From Eukaryota sp. TZLM1-RC (Eukaryota; Protista; Metamonada: BaSk clade), in assembly GCA_040285825.1 (NCBI GenBank), contig JAUPSS010000005.1, forward strand, positions 1,736,001-1,800,000: DNA of 64,000 nt. The letters are read 5' to 3'. The notes beneath the pieces were generated by a model. It saw nothing but the letters and a program-made list of their open reading frames with translations, did not search any database and was not told where the DNA came from. Below, piece after piece: positions 8,554 through 42,227 of the stretch. The position numbers and the translations under genes are program-made. Position 1 is the first letter of the stretch, and every line of letters starts with the position of its first letter.

Positions 8554-9377
8554 TTAAGTATTAAAGATATAGCAGCAAAGGCAATACCAGCCACAGCACA
8601 AATCGTTTCTGGTAAAACAAGAATAAACTATATGTGTTTGCGTAGTGGGCCCACAACGTCACAAAGACCTTAAACCTGGAACAAAATCTGTTAAAGCAGA
8701 CATTTAATAGAGGAGACGGCGGAAGAGCCTAAAACCAAGGAAGTGCACTCTCGAAAGACTGCTCAGTTGGAACCATGTCCGAAACCTGATTCAAGCAATT
8801 AGTTGAGTACAAATATTCCAAAAGGCAAGAATGGGACGAATCGTCCATCTAATGTTATGCTATTGAATAGGAATCATGTACTGTATGTAGTTTTGAACTT
8901 CACATGTAGCTAATTGTTGATTTACACAATTGCAGGGTTCAAACAACACAACAAAATAGAGAATGAAATGCTAAACAAATAATCAATTGAAATAAATAAG
9001 AATACACAATTGAAATGGCCTCTACTTACTCCATGAATAAGATTTGTTTAACACAAAACTTCAGAACAAGTAAAATAAACTATAATAATTCAACTCAGCT
9101 ATATTTAATATATTGATGAACTTCACACCGCTATGTTAAAAAGGATCTTGGACGAAGTGAAAACATCTTTAGATGTACGCTATTTTGCTCTATATTGGAG
9201 TTGGCAGTAGACATTCTGCTACCAATTTCAGATGTCTTTTTGTATTAAAAAAAGGAAAACAACCCAGATGCAAAGCCATTGTTGGTGGCAACTGGTTTTA
9301 AAGTCACTTTTGCATTGTTTTTTTTGAAAATTATTTATTAGAATTGTAAAAACTGAGATTTCATATTGATTATTTTT

Positions 9378-12300
9378 TCAAAGCCTTAGGTTACGACTTG
9401 CAATACGAGCTGATCTCCTAACAGGTCTGGAAGTACTTGCTTCCTTCTTTTTCCTTGGTTTTTTCTTTGGTGTTGGACTTAGATCCAATGCACAAATGGA
9501 GGAACTCAAACTGCTCACTTCCATACGATCAAAGCAAGGGGTCTTACTAGCCCAGGAAGCTTCATTTGGTCTAGTTAACTTAGGGGTTTTGTGCTCAAAG
9601 GAATCTATAATTAATTCATTTTTAATAAATATAGGAAATCCCCAAGAAATGACAGAGCTTCCAGTTAAGTTTACCAATTTGCAACAGTTTCGGGATCTAG
9701 GAAGCAACTCTAAAGGCGAAGTTGGCGTTGTGAAGGTTGATAGCAATAAATCATAGGTTAATCTATCAAGATCCTTATCCGTAACATCCCACAGACATCC
9801 AAGTATTAAAAAAGAAGAAACATTTCCAAAGGCTAAATAATTCAAAACAAAACCATCAGAATCAAAGTAATTGTAATCAATCAATTTTGATGAAGAGCAA
9901 CCCATCAAAGCAATTAAATAGGGTGATTTGGTTGAAGGCAAAAAGTACTTGGAGAAAACATTTTCACCGGCACCATGACCACAATAAAGAAAAACGTGAT
10001 GATTTGACATATTAGAAAGGCTCATCTGTGGATCATGACACGTGTCAACCACACCAGTCCAATTATTCGTCACATTTAGTTTTTGTTTGAATTCATTAAA
10101 AGATTTCGTGGTTACAGGTAAATCCCCCGAAGGATTGATACAATAGTAAACTGAATTTGGATCAACTATCGACATTGACATTTGGGAATCTAAATTTGAT
10201 TTTAACAATGAAAAATGATCATAATTTAAGAATCGAGAAATTGTTATGGAATTTGAAGAGAAAAAAGGACACGATTCTATCGGAAAACATTGGAGGTTCG
10301 AATCAAGGATCAAAAACACGTGAGAGCTATCAAAATTTGAATGGTCTTTTGATAGGCAAATGACTGGAGTACTGACAGATCTTGGACGAGTCGAAATTTT
10401 GGGTTGACAAGTTTCATGAGCTTTACTAATCAAAAGTGACAGGTCATCATGACAGGATTGTGACAAGTTCAAATTTTGAATAAAATTTTTTGTAAGATAA
10501 GAATAGAGATCAGTCGAACCAGTTTTGATTAGTAAATACAAACATTTTTTGATGAAATCCAAAAATTCCTTCAATTTTTCATTTTTTTCCGTTTTTGAAA
10601 ACAATTTCAAAGTAGCAGAGTCTAATAATTGTGACAGATCATCAATAGGTAAAAATAGGTATTTCAAAAAACCCAAATTTTCGTCAAATTTGGACAAGAG
10701 CTCACCCAAATTTTGGTTCTGAGAGTACCTTTTATTCCACCAAACAGATTTTTCACTTTCAGATTTTAAATTCTTTTTCTTTGAACTTTGAAGCAAATCC
10801 AAAGATTCCTCTAGAATTGAATTAAATTCTATTAATAACGGTTGAAAATTAATTTCCATTTTCCAAAATAATGGTCCTGAATCTGCAGAAATAAAAGCAA
10901 AAAGCAAGCTATTGTTAGGCAACAAAGTCAAAGAAATTAATGGTGAGTCAAAGGAGTCTAAATTTTGTTGAATTTGATTGACAAAGTTAGTGGCAGTCGA
11001 GGTGACGTCATTTGATTGAAAATTTGATTGAATGTCAAGATTATTGAAACTGTTTTCCAGGAAATCTAAATCACTATCGACTGTAGAATTTACAGTAAAT
11101 TTTTGACCTTTTGTTTTCAAAATATTGAGCCTGTGTAAATGAGAAAAAGAAGGTGAAAATGATTTTGAATTGATTAAAAATCCTAAATTAGCCTTCCCAG
11201 ATTCAAATAATTTCAGTGCCAAAAGTCCAAAAATTTGTGAATTTTTGACCTTGAATAAAGACCCAACAGGAACGCAAACGTCATTGAGTGACCAAATTTT
11301 CGTGCTGAGTTCAACCAAATCAATATGATCCCCATTTAATAATTTAAATGAATTAATATTAATAAAATTGATCACCTTTGAAACAAAAAAACTAGATTCT
11401 TGATGGAAAGGGTAGAACAAAAAAGGGTAAATAAAAGCAAAATGGTGACATTCTGAGACAACCTTGTTCCTGAAAATGGATTGATAAATTGGATTGGTTA
11501 CGTGAGCAGGTACGTCATCATCGACATGAAATGACGTGTTATTTTGAACTTCACACATGTCACCTTCCAGAAACAGATCAATCAATTTGCCAAGTTTATC
11601 GCCAATCAAAATTGATTGACAATACTTCCGCCATTGCTTGATTTCTGAAGCTATGGACCTTCCACAAGATACTGATAAGAGTGAATACAAGCAATTTTCT
11701 TGAATAAAATTATAAACAGTTGAAAATAAAAATGACAATACAATGCTTGATTCGGAACTAGAATTGAGTAATTTGCAAATTGAAATAGTTGGTTTGATTT
11801 CAAAATTAGAATTTGTATATAATAGTAATTTAAAAGCTTCTTTTAATAAAATGAAGGAATCAAAAACGCTACAATTCAACTGTAAGTGTCTACTATTTAT
11901 TAATAAAACAATTGCTTGAATAATTGTGCCAGAAAATTTGAAATTTTGAGGTAGAAGAGATCGGTCAATCAAATTCAAAAGGTTTTGGTCTAACCTCCGC
12001 GAATCGTGGCCATTAGGGATCATTTTCATAAGTGAAACGAAATATTCCTCTTCATGACCAAATATTGAATCAAAAGCATTTGAATTAAATCTATTTGAAA
12101 CATCATATGGCAGAAAAGAAATAGCAAATCTGAAACAAAACACCAAAGGAATAATTAAAGAATTAAAATGAGTGATGTCCTTTGAAATTAATGAAATCAG
12201 CAAGTTATAAATACTTTCAGTAATTGAGAAATATTCTTCATTAAAACTCAAATAGAATAAATGGTTAAATAAATATTTGAATAACAAAATAATGGTAACT

Positions 12301-14378
12301 AATTGGTTTCCAAAAGCAGCATTTAAATCTATAATAGAAACTATATTCGAAAAATTTTCAATATTAATTCTAGAAAATAGGGAAATTAAAACAAGACTGG
12401 AATTCTTGAAATAAAAAGAACAAATTTTTGAAAAATTATGACTGACCAAATTATTTAAATTTTTGTACCTCTTCTTGATGCCCACTTGTCTACTTATGAG
12501 CTCTATTATCACGTCATCCGTCACGTAATCTTTCAGCTCCAAAATAGACTTTATTAACAAACAAGACGTGGATAATTGGTTAACTTGGTCTACCCAATTA
12601 TTTAAAAAAGGATGAATTAATTCAAAAAGTTCTACACAATTTGATTTAAATTTAAATAAAAGAGATGCCAATACTAGACCAAAACTTGGGTCAATATTAG
12701 CCAACCAATCAATTAATTTTGACCTACATGACGTGATTGTAGACGCGTAATCAGTCCAAAACCTTGACAGTTTAAATAAATATTGTGATAATCTAATCGA
12801 ATCAGAAAGATCAAAACATAGCTCAATAAAACGGTCAGAAATAACGAGAAAATCGTCAACAAAAGCTGGAGTTTTTGAGACTAAAATAACTTTAAATAAA
12901 CTGATTAATCTATCAAAAAGTTCATCATTGGGACAAATTAAAAGGGTTAGATTGACGGAAACTTTCAAACATAGATCACCATCAAAAAAGCAATCATTTG
13001 TCGAATCATCGAAATTTTTGCGTAACAAAAAAAGGCAAGTCGATGACAAGGAACTGTAGAGTCGATTGGTTGCCGAAAGGAGGATTTCTGGGTTAAGAGT
13101 AAAGAACTCTTTACTCTTAATCAAATCCAAGACATTTGTGACCCTTTCAACAATTAAATCAGATTGATTGATTGCTAAAATGATTGAAAATTGATTGCAA
13201 AGAATTGAAAACTCGGTAAATGACAGTAGCAATCCTTTTTGATGACTTTGCTGCAAAGTATTAAAAAAGCAACTAGAAATCAGTGAATCCAAAATAGAAA
13301 TAACAGAATCAGTGATTATATAAAAAGAATTAAATAAATTTTTGTAATCGTAAAAATCACTATTGAAGAAAAATTCGAGTTTTGAAGTAATTAATTTTCT
13401 GAAATGGTCAAATACTGGAATTAAAGCAAAATGGTGGTGAGTAAAAGTAATATCAAGAGAAAACCGGTTTAATTGATTTAAATAATTAATAGTATTTGTT
13501 TTGCTTAAATCATTGAATAAAATTCTATTAATCAGGTTTAAATTGTAACAAAATTTCTGATCCAATTTAGTTAAGACAATGTTCGATAAAGAATCACTAC
13601 CCTTGTTATTACCTTCCAAGAACAAATGGTTGAGAACATCAACTGAGGAATTTCGAATTAAAAAAATTAGAAAAATTCTAAAAATCAACTCTAATTCAGT
13701 TGTCAATAAACTACATAAAATTAAACACAAATCTATTCCAGATTTACATTGGGAAAGAACATATTTAGACTTTTTAAATTTAATTGGAAAATAATCTTCA
13801 ATAAGGGGCATTAAAACAGAAATTGAATTATTACTAAAACAATCAGCCTGGAGTAATAGACCACTAATAGGTCTCAATAATGAGCTAGCATTTTGACCTG
13901 TGCTGACGTCATCAAAAGTCAAAAATAATAATGACTTAATCAAACTTAATAGATCTACTGGTAAAGATAAGGTATGCGAAAGATAACAAGATTGATAAAA
14001 AGAGATCGCAAACAAATGAGCATGATCGGGGCCAAAAGGGGGAAAGAGGTGATTGTTGTTAAAGTGGTTGAAAGTGGTTAGGATAGAAGGGGAAAGAGCC
14101 TTATGAGCAGAGAGCTGTTGGAGGTAGTTGTAGTAAAGGCGGGATAGGTTAGAAAGAAGGAGGGGAGAGGGAGGGGATGAAGTCAGGAAGGTAAAGTAAT
14201 CAGATAAGGAAAGAAGGGAGCTGGCAGATATGTTAGCCTTCAGGAGACCTTGTAGAAGCTTGAGGGAGCAAGAGACGATGCGATCGGAAAAGGGCTGTGA
14301 TTGTAAACTATGAAGAGAGGATGTGATGAGAGATGGTGTAGGTTGCTGAAGGACCGTTGCTAGCTCATCAGGATTCAT
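9378..14378 (-). CDS. ESP1: Separase (peptidase C50)
   Basis: ~1670 aa single ORF. C-terminal WW..R, FPIES, INPSGDL, FLYCGHGAG (catalytic His), LMGCSS (catalytic Cys), GCLWDVTDKDLDR. Likely ATG at 14378. Confidence 0.92.
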   Translation of the reverse strand: MNPDELATVLQQPTPSLITSSLHSLQSQPFSDRIVSCSLKLLQGLLKANISASSLLSLSDYFTFLTSSPPSPLLLSNLSRLYYNYLQQLSAHKALSPSILTTFNHFNNNHLFPPFGPDHAHLFAISFYQSCYLSHTLSLPVDLLSLIKSLLFLTFDDVSTGQNASSLLRPISGLLLQADCFSNNSISVLMPLIEDYFPIKFKKSKYVLSQCKSGIDLCLILCSLLTTELELIFRIFLIFLIRNSSVDVLNHLFLEGNNKGSDSLSNIVLTKLDQKFCYNLNLINRILFNDLSKTNTINYLNQLNRFSLDITFTHHHFALIPVFDHFRKLITSKLEFFFNSDFYDYKNLFNSFYIITDSVISILDSLISSCFFNTLQQSHQKGLLLSFTEFSILCNQFSIILAINQSDLIVERVTNVLDLIKSKEFFTLNPEILLSATNRLYSSLSSTCLFLLRKNFDDSTNDCFFDGDLCLKVSVNLTLLICPNDELFDRLISLFKVILVSKTPAFVDDFLVISDRFIELCFDLSDSIRLSQYLFKLSRFWTDYASTITSCRSKLIDWLANIDPSFGLVLASLLFKFKSNCVELFELIHPFLNNWVDQVNQLSTSCLLIKSILELKDYVTDDVIIELISRQVGIKKRYKNLNNLVSHNFSKICSFYFKNSSLVLISLFSRINIENFSNIVSIIDLNAAFGNQLVTIILLFKYLFNHLFYLSFNEEYFSITESIYNLLISLISKDITHFNSLIIPLVFCFRFAISFLPYDVSNRFNSNAFDSIFGHEEEYFVSLMKMIPNGHDSRRLDQNLLNLIDRSLLPQNFKFSGTIIQAIVLLINSRHLQLNCSVFDSFILLKEAFKLLLYTNSNFEIKPTISICKLLNSSSESSIVLSFLFSTVYNFIQENCLYSLLSVSCGRSIASEIKQWRKYCQSILIGDKLGKLIDLFLEGDMCEVQNNTSFHVDDDVPAHVTNPIYQSIFRNKVVSECHHFAFIYPFLFYPFHQESSFFVSKVINFININSFKLLNGDHIDLVELSTKIWSLNDVCVPVGSLFKVKNSQIFGLLALKLFESGKANLGFLINSKSFSPSFSHLHRLNILKTKGQKFTVNSTVDSDLDFLENSFNNLDIQSNFQSNDVTSTATNFVNQIQQNLDSFDSPLISLTLLPNNSLLFAFISADSGPLFWKMEINFQPLLIEFNSILEESLDLLQSSKKKNLKSESEKSVWWNKRYSQNQNLGELLSKFDENLGFLKYLFLPIDDLSQLLDSATLKLFSKTEKNEKLKEFLDFIKKCLYLLIKTGSTDLYSYLTKNFIQNLNLSQSCHDDLSLLISKAHETCQPKISTRPRSVSTPVICLSKDHSNFDSSHVFLILDSNLQCFPIESCPFFSSNSITISRFLNYDHFSLLKSNLDSQMSMSIVDPNSVYYCINPSGDLPVTTKSFNEFKQKLNVTNNWTGVVDTCHDPQMSLSNMSNHHVFLYCGHGAGENVFSKYFLPSTKSPYLIALMGCSSSKLIDYNYFDSDGFVLNYLAFGNVSSFLILGCLWDVTDKDLDRLTYDLLLSTFTTPTSPLELLPRSRNCCKLVNLTGSSVISWGFPIFIKNELIIDSFEHKTPKLTRPNEASWASKTPCFDRMEVSSLSSSICALDLSPTPKKKPRKKKEASTSRPVRRSARIASRNLRL

Positions 14379-14905
14379 TGACGAATAGAGTACCAATAGC
14401 AGGGAAAATGTTGTTTTGGGAAAATCCCATCAAACTCAACTCTGAAGTGTTAGGGAGCTTTTTGATTCGTTGCACCACTGCAATGCCTGAAAGCAGTTGC
14501 TGAACCTTTACAAACAAAACTCCTAAAATGGTACATAAAACCAGAAATTCTACGCTTTTTCAAATTGTTATTCCTAACATTTTTAAAATATACCACAGTT
14601 TCCGTGGTTACAATTCACAACTTGAAATTTCAAATTTTATTGACTTCACAAAACTTAAAATTCGTAAAAATTCTAGTTTCTGAATTTCAAAGAAATATAG
14701 AAGATGATGGTGACCAAATTTGTACTCACTTAAGGGGTGTTATAGTTGTTCAAGTGTTAACAATACTTACGACTTGCACTGTTTTAGTCATTTAAAATGC
14801 GAATTTAAACACTTTTGAGAAGGTGAGGAGAGGAAATATGAATTAATATGCCACAACTGCTCCTGCATCAGAAAACCATTTTAATAACAAATATTTACAA
14901 CTCAG

Positions 14906-15381: not shown

Positions 15382-16911
15382 TTACAAGGATCTTTGAAAA
15401 GCTTCAGTGTCTTTAAAAGATTTTTCTAAATTAGAAAACAATGATAAATTGGCATCCACACCTGAACCAGTGATGAGTATATTGGGAAATGGACAAGGAG
15501 GTCGACGAGGAAATGGGTCATTAAATGGAAATGAGTGACCAGGCATTGATCCCCAAGAACAGCCAGTCCTTTGAGCAGTATCCGAAGGCGTCTGGTGAAA
15601 CATGTGAAAAACTGCATTCTGTTGCCGGAATGCCGGGAAACAATGTGATATTCTTTCAAACAACAGGGAGGAAGACACTTGGGGTGAGAGTGTAGCAGAG
15701 GCTTCTCCCGAAACCAAGAAGAAGGCATTTACAACATTGGATTTGCCAGTGGCCAAATGATTGGTTATAATAACTGGACAGCTCTCCACATTACCAACTC
15801 TTTGTCCTTCCCATATGGCCGTACACTCTACCAAAGCAGCATTCTCGGCACACACCTGTTGGTCTTTGGTGGGTGTTAGCTTAGTGGCTGTAAGGAAATG
15901 AAGATACTGTTCTCCAAGTGTTTCATTGATGGATCTCACATGAGAGTTGTTTACAACAATGTGTAAGCTATAAAACGAAGACCTCAAACTGGACGTATCA
16001 CTTTGATTAGATGATTTCCGATCGATCGGGTTTGATGCAATAAACCCTGCAGTATCAATTACCCCTTTTGTACAATGGTAATCTCCCTTATTAGTTTCAA
16101 CTCCCACCACACGTTCTCGGTGAAATATGCCTGGTTTCTCAGTAATTAAACCATCAACTTTGGTATCTAGTTTGACAACTACCCCCAGTTCTCTGATTCT
16201 GCTTGACATATTTATAAGAAAATCAGATGTATTAATAAGTGCTTCGGAACCTTTAAATAAATTAATCAAATAGTAACCAAAATAAATGACACTTATTTTT
16301 GACGGTGAAGTCCCTATTAAGAAACAAAATGAATTAATTAATGCTACAATTAAAGGGGAATTTATAGTTGAAACAAAAGATTCCAAAGAAGAGTGGAAGT
16401 GAAGAAAGAAATCAGTACGGGATAGACCTTTGAAAGGAAAGGTCAAAACACGTGATAGGAGGAAAGAATCTGAGAGAAAATAATCAGAATAATGGTGACC
16501 AAACGAAATAAGTCTGTTTAATGTAGATTTAATTTGCTTCTCCTGTGATGGACAAAGCGAACAAAGCAAAAATTCAAAATCGTGGAGGGACGATGGTATG
16601 TCAACATAACCATTAGGTAAGTGATATCTGAACAAAGGAGAGAGTTTTAGAGTCTGTGGAGGTGTGATGCCATGCCGGGATGTAAGTTCTGAGATAAATG
16701 GTTTGAATACAGAAGAAGATAGTTGCGGGGAAGAATCAAGGAAGGTCTGTGTTTCTTCCAAAAAATGAGGAGTGAGTGAGCCACCAATACTAGATGATTG
16801 TTCAAGAAGAAGTATGTAAGTATCAGAGTCGTGTGAAGAAGCGACCTCCAGTGCACACTGAAGCCCAGAAGAACCTGCCCCAATGATGATGAAGTCAGGT
16901 GTTGGCTCCAT
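15382..16911 (-). CDS. FAD-dependent oxidoreductase (phytoene desaturase/retinol saturase-like)
   Basis: N-terminal DFIIIGAGSSG..LLLEQ...GG Rossmann motif, RVVGVET, TPSD...RTG..WGS. Confidence 0.75.
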   Translation of the reverse strand: MEPTPDFIIIGAGSSGLQCALEVASSHDSDTYILLLEQSSSIGGSLTPHFLEETQTFLDSSPQLSSSVFKPFISELTSRHGITPPQTLKLSPLFRYHLPNGYVDIPSSLHDFEFLLCSLCPSQEKQIKSTLNRLISFGHHYSDYFLSDSFLLSRVLTFPFKGLSRTDFFLHFHSSLESFVSTINSPLIVALINSFCFLIGTSPSKISVIYFGYYLINLFKGSEALINTSDFLINMSSRIRELGVVVKLDTKVDGLITEKPGIFHRERVVGVETNKGDYHCTKGVIDTAGFIASNPIDRKSSNQSDTSSLRSSFYSLHIVVNNSHVRSINETLGEQYLHFLTATKLTPTKDQQVCAENAALVECTAIWEGQRVGNVESCPVIITNHLATGKSNVVNAFFLVSGEASATLSPQVSSSLLFERISHCFPAFRQQNAVFHMFHQTPSDTAQRTGCSWGSMPGHSFPFNDPFPRRPPCPFPNILITGSGVDANLSLFSNLEKSFKDTEAFQRSL

Positions 16912-16934: not shown

Positions 16935-17300
16935 GTTTTTTTTATTATTTACTAAAACAAAAGTAACAAAACAAAACAAACTAAAACACATAAGAAACAA
17001 AATTCTCCACGCCAACTCTTGATGAATCTTTATACAGCTTGGACATCATTAAACTCAAGTACTTGGGAACACTTCTGTACAAGGCGAAAATGATACGATT
17101 CCTCCATAAATTCCCTGCAAAATTCTTACCGCTTGAGCGACATAAATTACCAAAATCATTGATAAAATTCAAAGCGGACTGTCCAATGTTGCCAAAAACC
17201 GAAAAGGCAAAAGGAACAAACGAAAACTTCGAGTAAAGATTCTTATATAAATCATTTAAAATATCAGTATATTTATTTCTTTTACGATCTTCAGATTAAT
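16935..17300 (-). mobile_element. 3' fragment of an RLE non-LTR retrotransposon (family E)
   Basis: EDRKRNKY..FVPFAFSVFGNIGQSALNFI..WRNRIIF, homologous to the RLE C-termini of the other copies, followed by a T-rich 3' tail. Confidence 0.7.
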
Positions 17301-18164
17301 ATATTTTTATTTATTCCAACAAAAACAAACTATACGACAAGATTAAATCAAGGTTAAATAAGTCAGCAAAATCAACATTATGGTTCAATGATAAGTCGGA
17401 TTGTGGAGGAGTTGATGCATTTACAATTGTGAAATCCATATCATGGACAAGTTTAAAAAGTCAATATCGGACAAGAACAGTAACTACATGGGCTAATGAA
17501 GAAACGACACCACAGTTATCAGGATACAGGATAGAGTAACCACTAGGAAAAAGAATTTTGAAGTTATGATGTAAACTAACAAAAATTTATTCTCTTTTGC
17601 ATTTAATTACAATGTGATCAGCACTGAAAACAAAAACTAATTAATGTAGGTCGGGATTTGTTACTAGCTACTATGTTCCTTGGATGTTTATCCTCTACCC
17701 ACCAATTCCCAATCACCACTCCCACTGTAATTCCCATTTACTGATCCCCTATTTACTGTTGATAATTCAGATAAGACTTTGTATGATTCCTCACCTATTA
17801 GTCATTTGTTCCAACCTCTTGTTGGTATTAAATCATTTCTAACTACCTTGTCAATTATATTGTTGATTTTTATGTTTCAATTTTTACTACTGATTTCATT
17901 ATTGATTTAGAAACTGTTTTTGTTCGTAATGCTACTGTTATCAGTTGATGTGCTAATGTTGAACCTGTTATTCCCCCTGTTCAATCTAATGTTGATTTCG
18001 ATGATGTAGTTGTTGTTGGTTTTATTTAACATGGCTCAGAAATTAATGATTTCCCAATTGAAACAATAGGAAGAAATAATAATGACGTATCTGTCATGGT
18101 TTCTTATTCATTTTTTTCATTTTTTTTATTGATATGATCAAAAAATTTAATCAAAATTTTTGTG

Positions 18165-21100
18165 TTAGATTTATCAATATCTGGAGACATAGAAAGTAAC
18201 ACTGGGCTGATTGGTTGGAAGATGTTCATTTAACTAGGTTTCTTTCTTCTTTATTGAATGAATATTCTCATGATTATGTTCACTTGTGGAAACCAGAAGA
18301 TGTTCAAGAATATTTGATGCAACCAACTTCAGATTCGTTTGAACATTCTGGTATTTTTTAACGTTCTTTTAGAGAACCCAATTTGCTTCCAAACATTATC
18401 TACTTACTCCCTTTTCCGACATTTATATTTTTTGTTCCAGTAAGTATAATGTTCGTGGGTCTCACTGGTGTCTTTTGATAATTGAGTTTCAACCTAACAA
18501 GACGCCATAGGGTTACTATATAGACGGTATTGCTACTGAACATTGGTTTCTTCCAATTAAAGAATTTATCAATAATTTGACTGGAGGGAATATTACCTTA
18601 TTTCTAAATTGCAATAGATTGAGTCAGCGAGACAGTCACGATTGTGGTGTATGGACTTGTTATTTTGCTAGACGGTAATTACTTTGATATCTGAAGGAAG
18701 TTTTGATTTATTTGAACTGCATGATAGGCTGAATCATTCTCACATTTATCAGAAAATGTATGAATTAAGAATACAAAGATTTAGTGATACAATAAGAGAT
18801 CATCAAGTTGAAAGTAAAAAGAGAAAGTGCAAAACTACATCAACTCCTCGTTTAAACAGGAATAGACAAGAGATTCCCATCCATCACTTGAACAATGCAA
18901 TAGTAAAAAAACTGCTCCATCAAAACGGAAAAAACAATAAAGAGCACTAAACCCCAAATCTGTGTAGAAAATACAATGTTGATTCTTGACAGCAAGAAAA
19001 TTTTGCAAAAAAAGCATTTTCTTTGCTCAAACAGGTCCTGCCGAGTCGTGGTGGTTTTAAGCCTGAATCTTTGATTAAGTTGACATCAAAGACCACTAAT
19101 CAAAATCTTTCTATGGTGATGTGCATTGATTTTGCACATATCAGGATGGTTAGCTTTACCAAAATCAGAAAAATCTATTTCTCCCAACTAATCAGATTAT
19201 CAACAAAATAAGAAAAGATGATTCAAATCTTTTGAAAAGAAAAACTCATGAAGAGTTTAATGAATGCATTTCAGATCAGAAAGTGTTTTTTATTCCCGAT
19301 TGTTGTTGATAGGTCTGACCAACACAATTTCTTTTTGGAAAGCCAATATTCGTTACTATTGAAGATGAGTTCCCAACTTAAATCTCTACCTGAAACTGAT
19401 ATTCATGTTCAGGCAGAATTATTCTCTAATGAAGAAATTTTGCTTCGTAGATTTTCAAACCTTATTGGCAATCATCAACCATATTATTTATTGAATCGCA
19501 ATTTAATCAAAATTGATGTAGAAGTATTGAAAAATCGATTCAGTGAATTTAATTTACCATTTTTCACTGTTTTAAATGATCCAATGGTGGATGTACTCGA
19601 TCAACTTTCACCAAGATGGAGAGAAGTTATCATCAGAGAAAATGGATTTTAACTTTGAGATACTCTGGTATTTGCCACAAGATTTATTAAAATACCCTAT
19701 GGACATTGCTTAGGCAATCTGGCATATAAAATGATTAGTGAAAGGCAATTCAAACTTCATCAAGAATTTATCAATATTTTATTTGTTGATTGTTTAGCAA
19801 CTGATTCACTTAGACAAAATTTGATTCAATACGGGCTCCATGATTGTGTATTAAGTCTCAAACTTTTTGTATTGTTTCAAAAAGATAAATTCATTTTGCC
19901 ATCTTATAAAACCATTCGTGCCACCGTCTACTCAATGGTTTAACATTCAAATGTGATATCCAAATTGAAAGAAACTGCTTCAAAATATCAACAATTACGA
20001 ATTCATACTACATGTTGCTTGAAGATGTATTGACAGTTCCAATTTGAACGTAATTTACTACCACCACAAATATCTGCCAAATTATATGAATCTTTGATGG
20101 CCAGAATTCGTTATATTTCAGCTGAGTATTATGGGCAAAAAAATGGTAAAATCAAGAAGTGCATTTCCACAGGATTTTGAAGACTGTGTTTATGCTGAAG
20201 GAGTTTACACTTTAAGAAATACCTTTGAGCAACAAAAGTTAAAAACTTTAACTTATCTTGATCATTTAAAACACAAGGCTGAACAGTTTCCACGATTTCC
20301 AACTGATGGCTTCAGTAGACCATCTGAGTAAATGGCCCAGGTAATTTTTGCCAATTTTAAAAATAGTTTGCAATTAAATTATGTAAAACAATTCAATCGT
20401 TTATTAATGCTTTTTTAAAAAAAACCCGATGTAGAAAATGTGTTAGCAGAAATCCACAAGCTGGGTGGATACTCAACGCCATTATCTACAATTATTTCAC
20501 TATACAGAATTAGGCTTTGTCAATTCAAAAACTTGTATTTAGTTGATGATAGAGATTGCATGAATTCTTTGTTTCGCCATCCTGAAAATATTGCAGACCT
20601 TCTGAATGATGAACTTTTCGATTTATGTGAACAACATGATATAAGAAATAATGAACTTAGAGACATATTTGAAGGTCTTATTGAGCCTTTTACTTGTCAA
20701 ATAAAGAATTTGGTCACTGGCGAGAATTTAGTTGATAACATATTTCCAGTTGATATATATTTTCTTGCAGACACTCTTGAAAAAGATCATGAAATATTGC
20801 TAACACCAGCAATCACAATTGCCCATTATATTTCCAGTAGAGAGAGAAAACCTCATCATATTTCTCCTGTCTCAACCACTGTAGGACCTATTTTTCAATT
20901 GATACAAGAACAATATAAAAGAATTATTGAACAAACAATAATTGATAATTTATCACCTACATATACGCTGAAAATGTCCAATACACTAGCCCAAATTACG
21001 AAATTCAAACAAACCGAACAATTTGACTTTTGGTCTAATATTCTCGAGTTAAACCAACCAATGTTCAAACAGAAGAGCTATAAATTCAACAACATTATCC

Positions 21101-22103
21101 CCACATATAGATTTAATATTGCAGTGGAATTAGTTCGTCGATATTTGCAAGGTCAGAAATGTAAGCCAGACAACAAGGCTAGTATTTTTTGATTTATTTA
21201 TTGATAATGTTGATGTTGAAACTTTTCAAGGCAAACGAATTGTTTGTGATCCTGGAAAACGTAATTTATTGTATTTTGGTAGTAAAAGGCTGATCAAAAG
21301 TTGTCCATGGTTCCTGAACATGAAACCGAACAGCAAAAAAATAGTCGGGTGATGAATCAAGACAAGAAGTACAAATGGTTGAGAACAACCCAAACGTCTT
21401 GGTCTTTTAAAAGTAGAATTAATGAAAAACAAGGAAAATGGGACCCAAAATACTGTGGCAGAGGAAGACAGAAACCAGACAATCGAAAATGCAAACACCG
21501 AATAATCCACCTTTGATGCAAATTCAGAAACTTTTATAGAGTTCTCAAACTTTGAGGTTACATAACTTCGACAGGTTTAGTTGACAATTGACTTTTACAG
21601 TCTTGACTTGTGGAGCATTCATAAAATACAAGCTTATATTCACAAGCAAAAGACTGAAAGTTGTTTTTTAAAAAACCTTGTTCAAAAGTTTGGCAATCCA
21701 AAAGACATTATAATTCTAACGAAATGATTATGGTAAAAACGGTTCCAAGAATTTAAAACATCATAGGCCTACTCGAGGCATTGGATGGATTCAATTTCTG
21801 AAAAGGAATGGATTTTAAGTATTGATGATTAATGAGGCTTTCACTTCAGCAAAATGTCGTGTTTGTTTTGAAAAAGTTGCTGCGTTTTTAAAAGTAACAA
21901 ATCCCAGATTCTATAGAAGAGAAAAGACTCCTGTAACTACACGTCATGGTTCATTAGCTTGTAATAGTGAGAGTTGCAAATTCAGTAACAAAGGCTCAAC
22001 AAAGCTTTTCAATAGAAATAAGCTGGCTTGTCTGAATATGTTTGCAATTGCTGAAGCCAGAAAGAGTGGTAATGAAAGGCCCCAGTATTTGTGTTGTAGC
22101 TAG
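18165..22103 (+). pseudogene. Decayed polyprotein, copy 1: 2A-like peptide - Ulp1/C48 protease - PolB-type 3'-5' exonuclease - Fanzor1 nuclease
   Basis: Manual multi-frame translation. LDLSISGDIESNTG (18165-18206). WLED..GSHWCLLI..YID..QRDSHDCGVW (18212-18654). Exonuclease motifs MCIDFA, NRNLIKID, QYGLHDC. Fanzor KTIRATV, FWSNIL..KSYKFNNII.T, RuvC-I CDPGKRNLLY (21245-), QKFGNP, PTRGIG, RuvC-II INEAFTS (E at 21834), CRVC..NP..HGSLAC..C zinc finger, RuvC-III FNRNKLACLNM, RPQYL. Many stops and frameshifts. Confidence 0.85.
18209..18678 (+). pseudogene. Ulp1/SENP-like (C48) cysteine protease domain within Fanzor locus 1
   Basis: DWLEDVHL start. His (CAC 18463), YIDG Asp, Gln (18625) and Cys (18643) all lie in one frame; internal stops present. 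Confidence 0.8.
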
Positions 22104-22205
22104 TTTTTGTAATTATTCCAGACGAAAATTGATCTTGCACTTGTGGGGAATTTCCATAAAACAGGAATGTGATTTTATTTTGTTCAACTTAAAACATTAG
22201 GGCAA
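22090..22205 (+). ncRNA. Candidate Fanzor omegaRNA scaffold / element right end
   Basis: Lies immediately 3' of the Fanzor stop, where Fanzor/TnpB omegaRNAs are encoded. Hairpin ttgtggg-gaatt-tccataa (22141-22159) enclosed by aattattcc (22111-22119) / ggaatgtgatt (22164-22174). Boundaries are inferred. Confidence 0.4.
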
Positions 22206-22744: not shown

Positions 22745-23353
22745 ATGCTTGCCCTCAGTTTGGTACTGGGGACGTTTCTTGGTTTCATCACCATTGCCAT
22801 TCTATACCAACACTATTCGCGACAATCAAAGATCTTCGTCAACTTCAACCTTTCCCTACACGTCATATCCTTGGTAGCCTTTGTCTTTTGCTTTTACCTA
22901 ATATATGCACTACTCATCATTACTCTTTCCATGCTTTTTACCATTCCCCCTCGGCTGTTTTTCACCTACCATCCCCCTCTTTTCGAGTTCAGTTCACAGC
23001 TCTCTTGGATAGCCATTGGATCTTTAGTTGGAGCTCTGTTTTTAATGACGATCCCTTACTTAATTTTTCTTCGTAATCTCGATTTAGTTTTTGATTTTTT
23101 CTTTTCTCTAGCATTTATTCACATTCTTGTTGTTTCTCTTCTCGATAAGCTTCCATCCGCTTTTTCATTCTATGGTATTCTGCTTTTTGGTGTTTTCTTA
23201 TCATGGAATGTTACTGAGCTTGCAGTCTATAGGTTTAGCCGAATGTCAATTAAATCTTTCCTAGGGGGTGCAAGGGACTCTTTAGAAGAGGAGAAAAATG
23301 GTGAGGAAAGGGAATTGGAAGTTGTGATTGAAAAAGATGAGCTATCCACTTGA
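22745..23353 (+). CDS. Multi-pass membrane protein, SYS1/TMEM244-like
   Basis: About 5 hydrophobic segments. FDFFFSLAFIHIL...KLPSAFSFY resembles the SYS1 D....HFIHL....FP..WW motif. Confidence 0.55.
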   Translation: MLALSLVLGTFLGFITIAILYQHYSRQSKIFVNFNLSLHVISLVAFVFCFYLIYALLIITLSMLFTIPPRLFFTYHPPLFEFSSQLSWIAIGSLVGALFLMTIPYLIFLRNLDLVFDFFFSLAFIHILVVSLLDKLPSAFSFYGILLFGVFLSWNVTELAVYRFSRMSIKSFLGGARDSLEEEKNGEERELEVVIEKDELST

Positions 23354-23548: not shown

Positions 23549-24988
23549 TTACACAGAAATATTAACTGCTTCAAGCTTTGATTCAACAATTGAAACATCT
23601 TGAAATGCCCTCCGTCCTCTACCCCTGTTTCCTCGGCGACATCTTCTTCCTCTTCTACCTGCATTATGATTGGGATGAGGTTGTTGTTGCAGGTTGGGGT
23701 TGGGGTTGACGTTCGGACTGGAGTTAGCAACACCTTTCAACAAGCCCAATGCATCAACGACAAAAGGTTGAACTTCTCGCTGAACAAGGGCATCCTTCTC
23801 GAGGTCATTAAGCACCTCCTTAATCTCCTTAAACATAGCAGTGACAGGATTGATTTTGGCATTGTGGAAAAGTTCATCAATCAAGGGTATGATGGATTCT
23901 TCATTCAAAATTGAACGTTCCATTATGGCAGAGTACTGATCAGGATGTTGATCAGGAGAGGCTACTGCATGAAGGAATAGATCAGTGAATGATTTTTGGA
24001 TTGCCTCCTGACATGTGCAAACTTTGGTTTTTGCTGTGTACTGATTGTTGACAGAGAAACAGTTGAGGTGTGAAGGTAGCTCTGAAGGAAAGAGAAACGT
24101 CTCAAAGCAACCTCTACATACAGCTTTGAAAGAGATATCAGGCAAATCACAACATTGATCTAAACTATCAAATAGACCCGCAGAGAAGCTGCAGTTGGAA
24201 CAAAAATCATAAATTCCATAGACATGAGCGTTGAAAAGTTTGCTTAAATGTTCAGACAACTTGAATAAGGAAGTAAATGTCTTTGTTCCCAACAATGAAC
24301 AGGTAATCGTTGTGCTTGTCTTTGGCTTCTGTTTGTTGAGCCAGTTTCCTGTGAGGTATTGAGCAACTTGACCTGATTTGAACTGTTCATATGCAATAGC
24401 AATATAATAGACATCTAATGAAGCGTATAGAATCTGCTTATCAGTAAGGCACTCATTTCTCCAATTACTTCGAGATATCTTCTTATCTTTTGGATGGATA
24501 CAAGTGAGATTTAGGGCGTTGAAAACACAGTGTGGATGTGAGACATTCTGTACAAGTACCCCTGGGTTACTTCGCATGCCAAGTTGTCTAAACATGATAT
24601 CTGTGTCATCTACAGGTGTTACATCAATGCCAAAGTATTTGGAGAACCGCTTCTTATCTTCACTGATTCCCTTGAAAACCTTAACAATTTCATTATCCAA
24701 AAGAAGAGAAGAAATACTTTGAGGTAAAGTGGTTTGTTGGTGAACTTGAACTAGAACAACCATGGTCGTGCTTGAAAATTGTAACAAATCCAAGCTGTTA
24801 TCTGGTTCTTTGAGTTTCTGGAATATAGGTTTCCATTCGGTGTCCACAGCTACAAAAGCATAGGTGAGACTGCTTCGTAAAGCAGAGAACACCTCAGTGA
24901 TGTAGTCTGGCGAATGGTCACGGAGAGATATGATGGTACAAGGCACTTTGGGGAGTTCAGCAGCAAATTGATGATAAGATGTTGTCAT
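23549..24988 (-). CDS. WRN/EXD-like DEDDy 3'-5' exonuclease with a Cys/His-rich C-terminal region
   Basis: VAVDTEWKP, LLQFSS, IVKVF.GI.ED, SNWR...LTDKQILYASLDV. Confidence 0.85.
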   Translation of the reverse strand: MTTSYHQFAAELPKVPCTIISLRDHSPDYITEVFSALRSSLTYAFVAVDTEWKPIFQKLKEPDNSLDLLQFSSTTMVVLVQVHQQTTLPQSISSLLLDNEIVKVFKGISEDKKRFSKYFGIDVTPVDDTDIMFRQLGMRSNPGVLVQNVSHPHCVFNALNLTCIHPKDKKISRSNWRNECLTDKQILYASLDVYYIAIAYEQFKSGQVAQYLTGNWLNKQKPKTSTTITCSLLGTKTFTSLFKLSEHLSKLFNAHVYGIYDFCSNCSFSAGLFDSLDQCCDLPDISFKAVCRGCFETFLFPSELPSHLNCFSVNNQYTAKTKVCTCQEAIQKSFTDLFLHAVASPDQHPDQYSAIMERSILNEESIIPLIDELFHNAKINPVTAMFKEIKEVLNDLEKDALVQREVQPFVVDALGLLKGVANSSPNVNPNPNLQQQPHPNHNAGRRGRRCRRGNRGRGRRAFQDVSIVESKLEAVNISV

Positions 24989-25439: not shown

Positions 25440-28400
25440 CTAGTTGATTGATGTCAACACTGATCTACTCCGAATCATGTTCTTTCATCACCAAATTTTG
25501 GTGATATTACTTTTCACTAAATCGTCTGTTCTCTGGCAAGCAGCTTTTTGTGGTGGCGAAAACAATTTGTTTTTGAATTTTTTTTTCTTCCTCTACATAT
25601 AACCGTTTAACTTAAAACCTGGCTGAACTGAGATCATTGCTTCTATTCTTTCTTGTTGATGTCTGAATCAGTTTCTGATTCTAATGGAGTCAAAAGAAAG
25701 AACGATAGTCAACAAGATGCTCAAGACGTCCTTTCCACCTCTCCTCCTCAACCTCTTCTCTCTTCATTTTTGGACAAAAAAAATTCTGATCAAGAATTTT
25801 TAGACAATCACGATGAAAAAAAAGTTTGTTCAAAAACAAAGCCACGCTCCTACAGATGCTCAAAGTGTCGACAACAGGGACATAATGCTCGAACATGCCC
25901 CAATGTTGGAAACAATGATGCGGCAAATTCTGAAACAAAATGTAAAAGAAAATTTATTAGAAGGAAAGAGTCTAAGGTAGAACCCATAAATAATGCTCCA
26001 CAAGTTGTTGCAAAACCAGTTAGTAATCGATTGAAGCACAAAACTTGCAACACTTGTGGTATTTCTTTTAGAAAAAATGCAAAAGGAAAAACTTCTGATT
26101 GCTGCTTGAAATGCCGCATAGTTGATAACTACCATCCTCCTATAAGAATACCTCAAGAAATTCATCCGACCAAATGCAATGAATTTGCTTTCGTTTTTCA
26201 AAGATTTTTGGATCAATTATGTAAAGGAAAGTATGCTATCAATATTATTTGGGAATTTTTTGGTTCTTTTTGTCCTCCTTTTGAACAAAATTTCGTTAAT
26301 ATTTCCGAAGATTTAACTAATATAGCACCGAGAAATCAGTCATCCGAGAAATTAAGTAAAATTTTTGAAGACAAATGCTTTGACAACAAATGGTCCAAGG
26401 CTTTGTCAGCTTTAAGTCCCGGAGTCAAAGCACCGAACAATGAAAATACAGTAGATAAACTGAAAATACTTCATCCTTATGAAGACCCTATTATGGATCA
26501 AAATTTTTACGGCACATACTGGGAAAATTATCCATTGATGCCATCAGAAGTTTTTTCGGTTATCAAAAAGAGACCTCGTGGTAAGTCTGCCGGACTTTCT
26601 GGTATTACTATTGATCATGTAAAAGCCGCGATTATTTCTTCAGAAGATTGCCTTGGTTTATTGACCAAATTTTTCAACCAAATATTATCTGGTCAACGCA
26701 AGTACCCAGAAGAATTAAGAAGTTCTCGTTTGACTGCACTTGTCAAAAATTCAAAAATGGATGTTCGTCCTATTGCAGTCTCTGAGAGCTTACATAATAT
26801 TTTTTCTGCGTGTTGCTTAAGAAGGTTCAATGAAAAAGCTAAAAAGATTTTATTACCCTTTCAATATGGTATAAATACTACAGATGGAGTCTCTTCAGCG
26901 ATTTTTGCTACTGATGTCTTATTTCGTCAAAATGAATCCAATGTTTGCATGTCATTGGATTTTAGTAATGCTTTCAATTCGCTAAGTCGTCGCAGTATCC
27001 ATGGTGCTCTATTGCAATATATGCCAGAATTAATACCATATTTTCAATCAACATATTGCACATATTCTAATTTACATTTTGGTAACAACATTTTGATTTC
27101 ATTAAGTGGCGTAAAGCAAGGAGATCCGTTAGGACCTCTTTTGTTTTGTTTGGCCATTCATCCTATTCTACTGCAAATTCAAGAGATGTTTCCTTCACTA
27201 AAAATGATTGCATATATGGATGATGTTGTGCTTATTGGTGAATTAAATATTGTGAAAAAAGCAACTGTATGTTTTAAAGAATTATTTACCAAAATTGGTC
27301 TCCGACTTAATTTACTTAAATGTGTTTTGTTATCGAATTCTCCAGTTTCCACAATAATTGATGATATTGAAATTCAAGCCAAATTATATTCAATTGATGC
27401 TATTCGTCATTTGGGTTCGTTTTTAGGAAATAATGATGAAATTACCAAAAAATTGTTTGAAAAGTTGAACTCAATTTCTGACAAAATTGACCGAATGATG
27501 AATTTAGATATAAAAAAACACATCAAATTTACCATTATAAGACTGTGTTTTAGTTCCAATTTTAATCATATATTTCGATCTACAAATCCTCTCGTCACTA
27601 GACCTTTGGCTCAAAAGTTTAATGAGTTACGTGCAAAAGTTCTGTCTCAATTACTGGGATGTAAAATGTTTCAAATTCCAGATCATGCTTACCTTAGTCC
27701 ACAATATGGTGGTTTAGGGTGGACGAAGGCTTCTATTCTTACCTCGTGTGCTTTTGTTGGTGGATGCAGAAATGCAATCTTTGAGTTCTCCGAAAGATTT
27801 GCAGATTGGGAAGATTTATTGATGACAACGCAAAGTTCCACTGTTTTTGCATTAAATGAAGAAATTTCAAGAATTGATGTAGAAAAATGGGGTCGATGTT
27901 TTCCCCAATCATTCAATGGCAATATACCAGAAAAAAATGTTTTAAATTTGAAGTATACTCTTCGAACATTACAGAAAAGATTGACTGGAATGTATGAAAA
28001 AGATCTTTATAATAATATTTGCAGCTCGGCTGTTTTAAATCAAGATCTTCACTCATTGTTATTGGAAAAGGGTGTTTGTGAAAACAAGGTGTCAGATTCT
28101 TCACTTTTTGTAACCATTGTACCACGAAGATTTGGATTGTGTGCTACTAATGAAGCATTTGTAACAAAAATGAGATTATATTTGAACATCCCCATTAACC
28201 AATTATTATCAAAAGAAAAATGTATTTGTTCGAATTCACCTCAACTCACTTTGCGCCATGCTCTAAATTGCTCTAAATTGATAACTTATCGTTCTTCATT
28301 ACATGATGCTGTTAGAGACACTGTTTTCAATATGGCACAAACTGCAAGGATATCGTGTATCAAAGAGCCCCTGCTGAAAGAAACACTTTCTCTAAATAAT

Positions 28401-30045
28401 TTTGGTTCTGATGATAGAGGTGATGTATACTGTGATTGGATTGATAATTCTGAAGCTATTGTTGACTTTGTCTCATGTAATGTTGCAAACGATACTTTGG
28501 TTCACAGAAGAAAACTTAATCCTGTGGCTGCTCTGGATTTTTAAAGCAAAAGAAAAACATAGAAAATATGATAAAGAAATTGAAGATGCAAATATCGATA
28601 GAAATACACAGCTGGTTTTTATTGCTTTCCCATTTTCGATAAATGGAAGATTATCAGTTGAAGCAGAAACTTTTTTGGATGACTTCCAAAAAATGGTGAA
28701 AGAAAAAACAATGAAAAGATTTGATATTTTTTTATGGCGTTCACGGATTCAATTTGCCATTATTAATAGATTACCGCGGTTTTTCAATCGAATTAGAGAA
28801 GCTTTAGCTAGACAGCAAGCAAATCAAGATTTTGTAGAGGAAATCTTGGTTTAATGATAGTCGTCCCATTAGTTATGATTCAATTTAATCAAGTGTGCAA
28901 ATTCAATAAATTAACATAATTTTGCAACCGTTTTCCAAATGGTGATGATTTACTGAATTCTACAAGTAATAATTATTTAAGAGACCTTGAAAATGTCCTT
29001 GATTGGTTGCCCGCTGAAAGTTGGAGTAAAAGTTTTTCCGTTTATGTACAGCAAATACCACCCTGAACACTTCTAAATTTGAGGTATAGTGTAAAGGTAT
29101 TGCAACAAAATGAGGAATGATTTTTGAAGGCTTGGATTTTATATATTTGTCCCGGCTCCGCCAAAGATGATAATATCGCTTTCGCCAACTTTTCTGTTAG
29201 ACGCTCAGAACAGTTCTCCTTCGTGTTTAATTACTCAACTTCTTCAAATTTATGGTATTCTTTTAAGTGATACCACATTTTCTTATACAATGCGCCGTCA
29301 ATATCTTATTTAGCCTGATAGCGTGCCTCATAATTTATTTTCCACATGTGGATCAAAAACTTCTCCAAATCACCTTTTTAATTGTAAACACTTCATTACT
29401 TTTCGAGCAAAAGTTCATGATGCAGTAAGTGATGTACTATACTGTATGTCAAAATCCTACAGAATTGTTGCCTATTCAGAACCATTACTCTCTACTTTGT
29501 TTGGCGAAGATATTTTGTGTTTGTTTGGTCGTAATGGAACTGATTTAATGCTTGACGACGTTGAAGGGACGACTAGCATTACTGATGTGAGGTGTACGGA
29601 TGTGTGCAATAATTCTTTCATACCATCAGCTCAGTCAAAACACAAGAATCCACTATCTGTTGCTAAAAACACTTAAATATAAAAAATAAATATTGATAAA
29701 TATTTAATACTTAGATAAATGTAAAGCACAATGGTTTTCTTTGAATGCTGAATCGCAAACTCATTATGTGCTTGCTACATTTCTTTTTCCCTACATGGCT
29801 CCTTTGGACCACTTGCTGTATCTATCTTGGATGATTTTGTTGAAATTGTGAAACAACATACAAGAAGAATTTTTGACAAAATGTTCTGGCAGAACAGAAT
29901 AGTATTTCCAATTTTTAAAGGTGTTGCCCTTTTGTTATTTTTTGCTTTGTTATCTCTTTGTGGGTTTTATGAGAGCAATACTTCCATTAAATTCTTTTTG
30001 GCTGATTTGGAGTATGAATATGCGGAAGTCTAAGATGATTGGTTA
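25440..30045 (+). mobile_element. Old CRE-like element (family C), split into 25440-25581 and 28918-30045 by the young family A insertion
   Basis: The left piece encodes SPNFGDITFTKSSVLWQAAFCGG.N.VFEF. The right piece resumes CNRFPNGDDLL..YLRDLENVLD..HLFNCKHFITFRAKVHDAV..WQNRIVF. Confidence 0.75.
25582..28917 (+). mobile_element. Near-intact full-length CRE-like RLE non-LTR retrotransposon (family A), single ORF ~1064 aa with one +1 frameshift
   Basis: ATG at 25659. CSKCRQQGHNARTC knuckle, CxxC..CxxC, RT (RPIAVSE, QYG, DFSNAFN, GVKQGDPLGPLLF, AYMDD), GGLG, CIC..HALNC, HDAVRD, RGDV..VDF, KHRKY. Extra T in the T5 run at 28538-28542 versus T4 in the 39452 copy. Confidence 0.93.
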
Positions 30046-34599: not shown

Positions 34600-35744
34600 G
34601 TATTTAGTGAATTTGCACACTTAATTTAATTAACTCATAACTAATGGGACGACTATCATTGAACCAAGATTTCATCTACAAAATCTTGATCTGCTTGCTG
34701 TCTAGCTAAAGCTGCTCTAATTCGATTGAAAAACCGAGGTAATCTATTAATAATGGCAAATTGAATCCGTGAACGCCATAAAAAAATATCAAATCTTTTC
34801 ATTGTTTTTTCTTGCACCATTTGTTGCAAGTAAAACAAAAAAGTTTCTGCTTCAACTGATAATCTTCCATTTATCGAAAATGGGAAAGCAATAAAAACCA
34901 GCTGTGTATTTCTATCGACATTAGCCTCTTCAATATCTTTATCATATTTTTTATGTTTCTCTTTTGCTTTGAAATCCAGAGCAGCCGTAGGATTAAGTTT
35001 CCTTCTGTGAACCAAAGTATCATTTGCAACATTACATAAGACAAAGTCAACAATAGCTTCAGAATTATCAATCCAATCACAGTATACATCACCTCTATCA
35101 TCAGAACCAAAATTATTCAGAGAAAGTGTTTCCTTCAGCAGGTGCTCTTTGATACACGATATCCTTGCAGTTTGTGCCATATTGAAAACAGTGTCTCTAA
35201 CAGCATCATGTAATGAAGAACGATAAGTTATCAATTTAAAACAATTCAGGGCATGGCGCAAAGTGAGTTGAGGTGAATTCGAACAAATACATTTTTCTTT
35301 TGATAATAATTGATTAATGGGGATGTTCAAATATAATCTCATTTTTGTCACAAATGCTTCATTAGTGGCACACAATCCAACTCTTCGTGGTACAATGGTT
35401 ACAAAAAGTGAAGAATCTGACGACTTGTTTTCACAAACACCCTTTTCCAATAACAATGAGTGAAGATCTTGATTTAAAACAGCCGAGCTGCATATATTAT
35501 TATAAAGATCTTTTTCATACATTCCAGTCAATCGTTTCTGTAAAGTTCAAAGAGTGTACTTCAAATTTAAAACATTTTTTTCTGGAATATTGCCGTTGAA
35601 TGATTGGGGAAAACATCGACCCCATTTTTCTACATCAATTTTTGAAATTTCTTCATTTGATGCAAAAACAGTGGAACTTTGCGTTGTCATCAATAAATCT
35701 TCCCAATCTGCAAATCTTTCGGAAAACTCAAAGAAAATCCAATC
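34600..35744 (-). mobile_element. 5'-truncated family A CRE-like copy
   Basis: High identity to 27780-28910. TSD ttatagaaaat at 34589-34599 and 35745-35755. Confidence 0.9.
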
Positions 35745-41633: not shown

Positions 41634-42227
41634 ATACCATGGTGGAAAGTAGCAATCATTTTGAAATCGCAATCAGCATGTCAGACAACTCTCAGCGAGA
41701 TTTTCCTGACATTTCACATTCTTCTAACATCATGCAGCAAAAGGAGAAAAAGGATAACGAGGTAACGGACTTAGTTTCCACCTCCTCCTTCAACCTGTTC
41801 TTCACAGAACAGCAGAGTTGTTCATCCCAAATTCCTCAGTCGGGAACAGTCATCCTGCTTTACAGGAATAAAAGGAAGGTCAGAGCCTCGATTTCCTATT
41901 GGAATGTCGTTTTGATCCTTCCATGGGGGTAGAGTACACCACTTTTTTGAGACATCAAGTGAGTCATGATATGGGTGCTGTTGAATCAGCCATGGTCATA
42001 ATCATTTTAGATATAGGTTGTTGTTCTTGTTTGTGTTTTGTTTTGAATTGTTATTTTGATGTTTTTGAGTTTGTTGTTTGTTGAGGTTTAGGTACTTGTA
42101 CTGTAGATCTGGGATGTTGTGCTTAATTTGTTATTTTGACAATGTTGAGTTTGATGATTATGTTTATAGTTTGTGTTTTCTATCCAGTAACTTGCATCAT
42201 CTTCTATCAACAAACCCATTTTCTGTT

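Follow-up and report, generated by a model that had tools for sequence, protein, structure and literature searches.

A protease, exonuclease and Fanzor1 polyprotein in Skoliomonas: a decayed copy and its intact relatives

Introduction

Fanzor1 nucleases take their omegaRNA from the right end of the element, with the adjoining flank as guide, and cut distal to a target-adjacent motif (TAM). The locus analysed here raises the question of whether such a nuclease can be the last module of a longer multi-enzyme open reading frame (ORF), or whether its apparent partners only happen to be nested at the same place. The locus lies in a 64,000-nt stretch of contig JAUPSS010000005.1 (positions 1,736,001 to 1,800,000, forward strand) from Eukaryota sp. 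TZLM1-RC; we call this whole 64-kb stretch the window and number positions from its first letter. The initial annotation, made from the sequence alone, had proposed that 18165-22205 encodes a 2A-like peptide, a C48 (Ulp1-type) protease, a DNA polymerase B (PolB)-type exonuclease and a Fanzor in a single polyprotein. Skoliomonas is a soda-lake protist (metamonad); we use S. litria, an inferred name, for the species of the window, and RCL for the sister species Skoliomonas sp. RCL.

Results

Intact relatives encode the modules in one ORF

A search of the exonuclease-Fanzor junction against 1.84 billion protein representatives returned seven proteins, every one of them belonging to one of three Skoliomonas species; the window element is most closely related to proteins of Eukaryota sp. 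TZLM1-RC (74-96% identical to the query pieces). Two RCL proteins are uninterrupted. P0021 (KAL0211769.1; 1905 aa, with 1791 stop-free codons from the 2A onwards in direct genomic translation) contains DVEANPGP, two C48 domains, a linker, an exonuclease and Fanzor1 in this order, and P0025 (KAL0227444.1; 1571 aa) has one protease. The domains of P0017 are those of P0021 (two C48, PF02902 E 2e-17, and exonuclease E 3e-13, both by Pfam), in a gene model that bridges a frameshift. The catalytic motifs are present in the uninterrupted RCL ORFs, and the order seen in the window recurs in five RCL loci. The initial annotation had left room for the domains belonging to separate, unlinked elements; an intact copy was found in RCL, where single ORFs hold them all. 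Judged from these relatives, the modules form one element and are not nested pieces.

In three Skoliomonas species, and in each family whose N-terminus can be read, the exonuclease accompanies Fanzor. Between RCL copies, the ratio of nonsynonymous to synonymous substitution rates (dN/dS) ranges from 0.12 to 0.27 in the exonuclease and from 0.05 to 0.22 in Fanzor, and the family B protease stands at 0.27; measured by these ratios, the exonuclease-Fanzor architecture shows purifying selection. No relatives outside Skoliomonas turned up in the 1.84-billion-protein search, a metagenome scan or the ESM Atlas, which together have limited sensitivity.

The window copy is a decayed version of the same ORF

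On the + strand of the window, 18165-22103 carries a decayed 2A, a SENP8/NEDP1-like C48 protease, a basic linker, a DNA polymerase delta (Pol delta)-type DEDDy exonuclease and Fanzor1. Three-frame translation and frameshift-aware alignment, with an X placed at every break, give a read-through span of ~1313 codons, in agreement with the single-strand domain order of about 1300 codons first proposed. The lesions comprise ~15 stops (near 18359, 18508, 18948, 18987, 19151, 19650, 19656, 19941, 20031, 20329, 20416, 21503, 21563, 21578 and 21816) and ~10 frameshifts (near 18207, 18413, 18672, 19134, 19286, 20139, 21178, 21314, 21430 and 21722). The window copy is a dead pseudogene, because both its 2A and the ExoI glutamate are broken.

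The 2A (StopGo)-like peptide (18165-18206, +) survives as a remnant that aligns at the position homologous to the intact 2A-protease junction of the RCL proteins P0060 and P0031; its NPGP has been lost, and N-T-G followed by the frameshift at ~18207 stands in its place. A second 2A remnant at 18798-18815 was considered and rejected, since 116-460 of 1000 shuffles were equally good.

The protease remnant (18209-18790, +) carries stops and frameshifts, and the residues listed in the initial annotation could all be located: His at 18457-18468, Asp at 18514-18528 (~18523), and Gln and Cys at 18625-18648 (Gln 18625, Cys ~18643). A hidden Markov model (HMM) built from 109 cellular SENP8-like proteins, with no Skoliomonas rows, has its sole match in the whole window at 18367-18696 (independent E-value 6e-10), and the protease translated through its breaks scores 44 bits, as compared to at most 5 in 500 shuffles. 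For the element proteases of intact relatives the best PDB match is SENP8/NEDP1, and the C48 proteases contain the His-Asp-Cys triad and oxyanion Gln in CE-clan order (Asn replaces Asp in the P0025-type protease). A quick tree places the window protease with those of the elements (Shimodaira-Hasegawa-like approximate likelihood ratio test, SH-aLRT, 86), which is weak evidence given the very long window branch.

The linker (18791-19118, +) resembles a nuclear localization signal, is basic from 18816, as had been claimed, and has two stops (18948 and 18987). It is homologous to the post-2A linker of a second family copy in the window (score 111; the best shuffle reached 57), and 18672-18947 is stop-free, spanning the end of the protease into the linker.

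The exonuclease remnant (19119-19900, +; ExoI 19119, ExoII 19494, ExoIII 19830) matches Pfam PF03104 at 19236-19649 (E 4e-4). The assignment as a DEDDy 3'-5' exonuclease stands with one reservation for this copy: the ExoII and ExoIII aspartates are retained, and a frameshift has removed the ExoI glutamate. Intact relatives, whose exonuclease best matches Pol delta, keep ExoI DxE, ExoII NxxxFD and ExoIII YxxxD.

Fanzor1 (19901-22103, +) is joined to the exonuclease without a 2A, and together the exonuclease and the N-terminal half of Fanzor are 71% identical (403/571) to the sibling P0051. A TAA at 19941, common to both window copies, was rejected as a true ORF boundary: the reading frames of the siblings P0001, P0050 and P0051 continue across this point, which marks the stop as a lesion. 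Every motif of the initial annotation has its place, namely the N-terminal KTI (19905), the D(PG)/E/N triad (DPG 21248, RuvC-II E 21831, RuvC-III RN 22011), the C4 zinc finger (21855-21977) and RP.YL (22077), before the stop at 22101-22103.

The nuclease is Fanzor1

The nuclease is Fanzor1 by sequence, fold and motifs, which settles the proposed comparison of the C-terminal part with Fanzor profiles. The last Fanzor piece of the window matches PpFz1 (E 2e-8) and SpuFz1 (E 0.005), and the Fanzor of P0021 matches SpuFz1 over nearly its full length (E 3e-32), so that the N-terminal WED/REC part is covered as well. In a Foldseek search with a predicted exonuclease-Fanzor model (predicted local distance difference test, pLDDT, 63; predicted template modelling score, pTM, 0.35), the top seven hits were Fz1 structures, followed by the exonucleases of Pol delta, herpes simplex virus (HSV) and Pol epsilon. 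RuvC-I DPG, the shifted RuvC-II Glu and the C4 zinc finger are present. RuvC-III reads RN in all Skoliomonas families, not RD (the motif of Bao and Jurka). We rejected this Asn as the mark of a dead nuclease, since the active GtFz1 likewise has it, and D606N increases SpuFz1 activity (PMC11423790).

The core is constant and the protease is a swappable cassette

The constant core of the element is exonuclease-Fanzor, and the protease is an optional, swappable cassette. Two proteases are found in P0021, one each in P0025 and P0031, and none in P0012, L008 or the second window copy. The proteases of P0025 and P0031 share only ~32% identity, against 97% for the exonuclease-Fanzor DNA of the two. 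Among the six readable S. litria copies only the one at 18165-22103 has a protease, ~30% identical to those of RCL elements. The second window copy (42019-44754, +) consists of a leader, a 2A-like motif (~42240-42270) directly before the linker, the exonuclease, and a Fanzor broken off after RuvC-I; it shares 82% DNA identity with 18923-21309. Despite this overall figure, 19711-20030 and 43150-43470 are nearly identical, including a shared stop, which probably reflects gene conversion between dead copies.

Leaders upstream of the 2A differ among near-identical copies; L004 and L005, for example, begin to share sequence only at an ATG ~37 codons before the 2A cleavage point. The leader of the first window copy has equivocal homology to those of the second copy and L008 (4/500 and 60/500 shuffles as good, respectively), so the left end of the window copy is undefined. 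Intact RCL ORFs have a single 2A each. The consensus D(V/I)ExNPGP is found in P0021, P0017, P0031, P0005 and P0060, and is departed from in P0025 (NAGP), in the second window copy (NPDP) and in the first. Divergent upstream ORFs were rejected as common cargo, as they differ between loci. The best explanation of these data is a Skoliomonas-specific family ORF of the form leader, 2A, zero to two SENP8-like proteases, basic linker and exonuclease-Fanzor1, followed by a putative omegaRNA right end.

Some loci depart from this layout. In L027:8019-9226 an internal deletion joins leader, 2A and protease to the last ~75 Fanzor codons and an intact right end, apparently a protease-only 'ghost' that would retain the omegaRNA. 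A further RCL 2A-SENP8 family (P0060 and P0062; L009:7001-8030 and 8934-9872, -) continues into a helical region without exonuclease, and only a weak trace of Fanzor RuvC-I (E 0.002) lies nearby. In L002:8001-14084 (P0009), a 5'-truncated element follows a DEAH-box helicase in frame, in one uninterrupted 2027-aa ORF; this is either a host-gene fusion or another captured module.

Right ends are fixed and left ends are ragged

Aligning the flanks placed the right end and yielded no target-site duplication (TSD). Five S. litria copies are homologous up to a terminal hairpin ending in TTCC(C)A, at 22156 of the window. Sibling homology ceases at 22156-22166, short of the 22205 first proposed. We consider 22090-22156 (+) a putative omegaRNA scaffold and right end, and 22157-22176 (+) a putative guide or right flank. 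The structured 3' segment that had been annotated is not recovered in the window copy, which is decayed here and folds no better than shuffles (z -0.3); three hairpins fold in less decayed siblings (z -1.8 and -2.0) and in RCL family B. Neither compensatory base pairs within the S. litria set nor an Rfam match were found for this RNA.

Just beyond the terminal hairpin, two of the three families have a recurring short word. CAGGA lies within 12 nt of the hairpin in four of five S. litria copies (22162-22166 in the window; 10/20000 random sets as good), and TTTCA follows it in three of four RCL family A copies (162/20000 as good). For CAGGA, either the element truly ends at 22166 or new sites resemble the guide seed of the parent.

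While 3' ends are fixed, 5' ends are ragged, with copies beginning in the leader, in the linker or deep in Fanzor. No TSD was found at nine loci and the window, and no terminal inverted repeat (TIR) or poly(A) at the copies examined, whose true left ends are perhaps not sampled. The intact ORFs have no reverse transcriptase (RT) according to Pfam, and the copies have no tail. Of the Helitron marks, the element has a terminal hairpin, but it has no Rep and its ends are not CTRR; a PIF1 gene adjoining L005 is not common to other copies. A Pfam scan of 10 window ORFs detected no DDE, HUH or tyrosine transposase, as the initial annotation had noted for this neighbourhood.

Several right ends (L007:13065, L002:14158, L027:9226, L008:14777 and L008:6253) lie 40-110 nt before a called start codon on the same strand. 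The window copy differs: a stop follows its ATG at 22167, and the nearest long ORF downstream begins at 22745. In L004:15635-15855 a ~45-nt segment that takes in the terminal hairpin and the right flank occurs again 170 nt downstream, the two repeats enclosing an AT-rich spacer. Later insertions have split Fanzor copies elsewhere: a Gypsy long terminal repeat (LTR) element in L003:11308-17525 and a tandem array of 1.3-kb units in L010:11721-17107.

Genomic neighbourhood

The flanking host genes, none of which is part of the element, encode a separase-like protein (9378-14396, -; by eye), a flavin adenine dinucleotide (FAD) oxidoreductase (15382-16911, -; Pfam), a SYS1-like protein (22745-23353, +; weak Pfam match) and a WRN-type 3'-5' exonuclease (23549-24988, -; by eye). 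The window also has at least five copies of a non-LTR retrotransposon of the restriction-like endonuclease (RLE) type with zinc knuckle and RT (25653-28911, 34601-35734, 39472-41625, 54322-56204 and 61031-63020), some of them 99% identical, plus a fragment at 16968-17560 and further families. Retrotransposons of the window are 92-95% identical to loci of the TZLM1-RC assembly. Remnants that resemble a more divergent Fanzor occur at 47515-47838 and 48949-49457 (weak HMM match at 49190-49357), split by a non-LTR fragment.

Discussion

Comparison with known systems

We found no paper describing a 2A-protease-exonuclease-Fanzor architecture, in a search that covered subscription journals thinly, and a keyword search of Fanzor surveys brought up no such fusion; the architecture thus appears undescribed, as first suggested. 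SpuFz1 (Spizellomyces punctatus, Spu-1 elements), PpFz1 and GtFz1, the last of which shares the RuvC-III Asn (PMC11423790), are stand-alone ORFs of ~600-720 aa, whereas the Skoliomonas Fanzor is the C-terminus of an ORF of 1100-1900 aa with 2A, protease(s) and exonuclease. Spu-1 also has 30-nt inverted repeats; neither TIR nor TSD was found in the Skoliomonas element. Giant-virus Fanzor1 proteins (IMG/VR loci L011-L025) start alike at the N-terminus and are 24-30% identical in the RuvC region, but they stand alone (mostly 600-710 aa), and none of these 15 viral loci has exonuclease or protease similarity.

Other features are shared with retrotransposons. NeSL/Utopia non-LTR elements have an Ulp1-type protease at the N-terminus as an optional part (PMC4640811), and Ingi/L1Tc/Rex1/CR1 elements have an N-terminal 2A (PMC3708506). 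As in Skoliomonas, these modules belong to one mobile ORF, and copies are 5'-truncated. Unlike these elements, the Skoliomonas element has no RT and neither RLE nor apurinic/apyrimidinic endonuclease (APE); its nuclease is a predicted RNA-guided RuvC enzyme and its protease is SENP8-like. The best matches of the accessory modules, the SENP8/NEDP1 deneddylase and the Pol delta exonuclease domain, are only 25-35% identical, and homologues of these proteins appear to have been captured into a mobile polyprotein in Skoliomonas. In cis, the element lacks what defines cut-and-paste transposons, Helitrons and non-LTR elements.

Proposed mechanism and its weak points

We propose that the element moves by cutting, trimming and copying in from the guide end, a mechanism to which we give an even chance. 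Skipping at the 2A would release the enzyme from any upstream leader. Fanzor, with a guide from the right flank, would cut empty or guide-like sites ~15-20 nt past the insertion point, and the distal cut would leave a TAM-side 3' tail mismatched to the donor junction, which the fused 3'-5' exonuclease could trim. The guide-side end would then prime repair synthesis, so that the element would be copied from its right end inward, in a homing-like manner, halting at variable points; copying in this direction would account for the fixed 3' ends, the ragged 5' ends and the absence of a TSD. The protease may be accessory cargo that strips NEDD8- or SUMO-type tags, protecting the protein or biasing repair. 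An analogy is offered by T4 intron homing, which needs 3'-5' exonucleases (DexA and that of the PolB polymerase) and whose endonucleases would likewise cut away from the insertion site, with trimming before copy-in (PMC2988022). The T4 system finds its target through a protein and draws on exonucleases that are phage proteins in their own right, whereas the Skoliomonas element has its exonuclease fused and would be targeted by RNA.

Several observations weigh against this proposal. Ragged 5' ends are also compatible with copying in trans, whether by reverse transcription or by a rolling circle, and Skoliomonas genomes, besides having hAT genes, are rich in RLE non-LTR elements. Neither the true left ends nor the TAM have been defined, the flank word may merely belong to the element end, and RCL family B has no such word past the hairpin. 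The second family A protease has a dN/dS of 1.4 with few changes and no selection signal, and the relatives searched included no intact S. litria ORF.

Going further, the family could represent a class of eukaryotic mobile element that is self-sufficient and needs no transposase, in which Fanzor would open guide-like sites, the exonuclease prepare the ends and repair copy from the guide end, the 2A borrowing any upstream start and the deneddylase-like protease tuning host repair or silencing. We advance this wider claim only tentatively and regard it as rather doubtful; a 'new mobile element class' is unproven, because the element may be subject to mobilisation in trans.

Alternative explanations

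Such mobilisation is the rival that fares best, and we consider it a reasonable possibility, if not the expected outcome. The element would be non-autonomous and moved by a Helitron/HUH, hAT-type DDE or RLE non-LTR RT machinery, and exonuclease-Fanzor would only guard or restore its own locus, as TnpB does. According to three sources, known Fanzor1 elements ride DDE, Crypton or Helitron transposons or lack a cis transposase (PMC3627910, PMC10530073, PMC10432273). Non-LTR elements typically show 5' truncation and carry 2A and Ulp1 domains (PMC3708506, PMC4640811). The window is rich in RT elements, and some copies have hAT and PIF1 genes close by, but these hAT, PIF1 and RT neighbours differ between copies, which moreover show neither the TIR, TSD or poly(A) tail nor the CTRR 3' ends that such carriers leave.

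It is unlikely that the exonuclease serves to make cuts mutagenic, as in engineered TREX2-Cas9, deleting or silencing rival elements, endogenous viruses or host 5' regions with no copying at all. Engineered exonuclease fusions were made for that purpose, and with several right ends so close upstream of host start codons, guides could derive from host 5' regions. The many dispersed, mostly dead or truncated copies nevertheless behave as a selfish element, not a domesticated system, and no conserved syntenic copy was seen.

A role of the protease as a polyprotein maturase that frees exonuclease-Fanzor, as in viral polyproteins, seems to us quite unlikely. The protease does sit in cis, ahead of a long disordered linker, and no further 2A follows it in intact RCL ORFs; yet the protease is missing from P0012, L008 and the second window copy, duplicated or swapped elsewhere, and closest to SENP8 deconjugases.

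Chance nesting of a protease pseudogene beside a Fanzor element, which the lone, divergent S. litria protease could suggest, is highly improbable and largely refuted by the identical order in uninterrupted ORFs and five RCL loci, the stop-free stretch linking protease and linker, and the clustering of the window protease with element proteases (on a long branch).

Significance

The Skoliomonas element combines modules known from retrotransposons (2A and Ulp1-type protease) with an RNA-guided nuclease, and is a natural counterpart of the nuclease-exonuclease fusions engineered for genome editing. With naturally intact ORFs at hand (KAL0211769.1 and KAL0227444.1), no reconstruction is required to test it. 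A 3'-5' exonuclease fused to Fanzor1 and kept by purifying selection in three species suggests that processing of the ends after the cut is part of the job that Fanzors do in their hosts.

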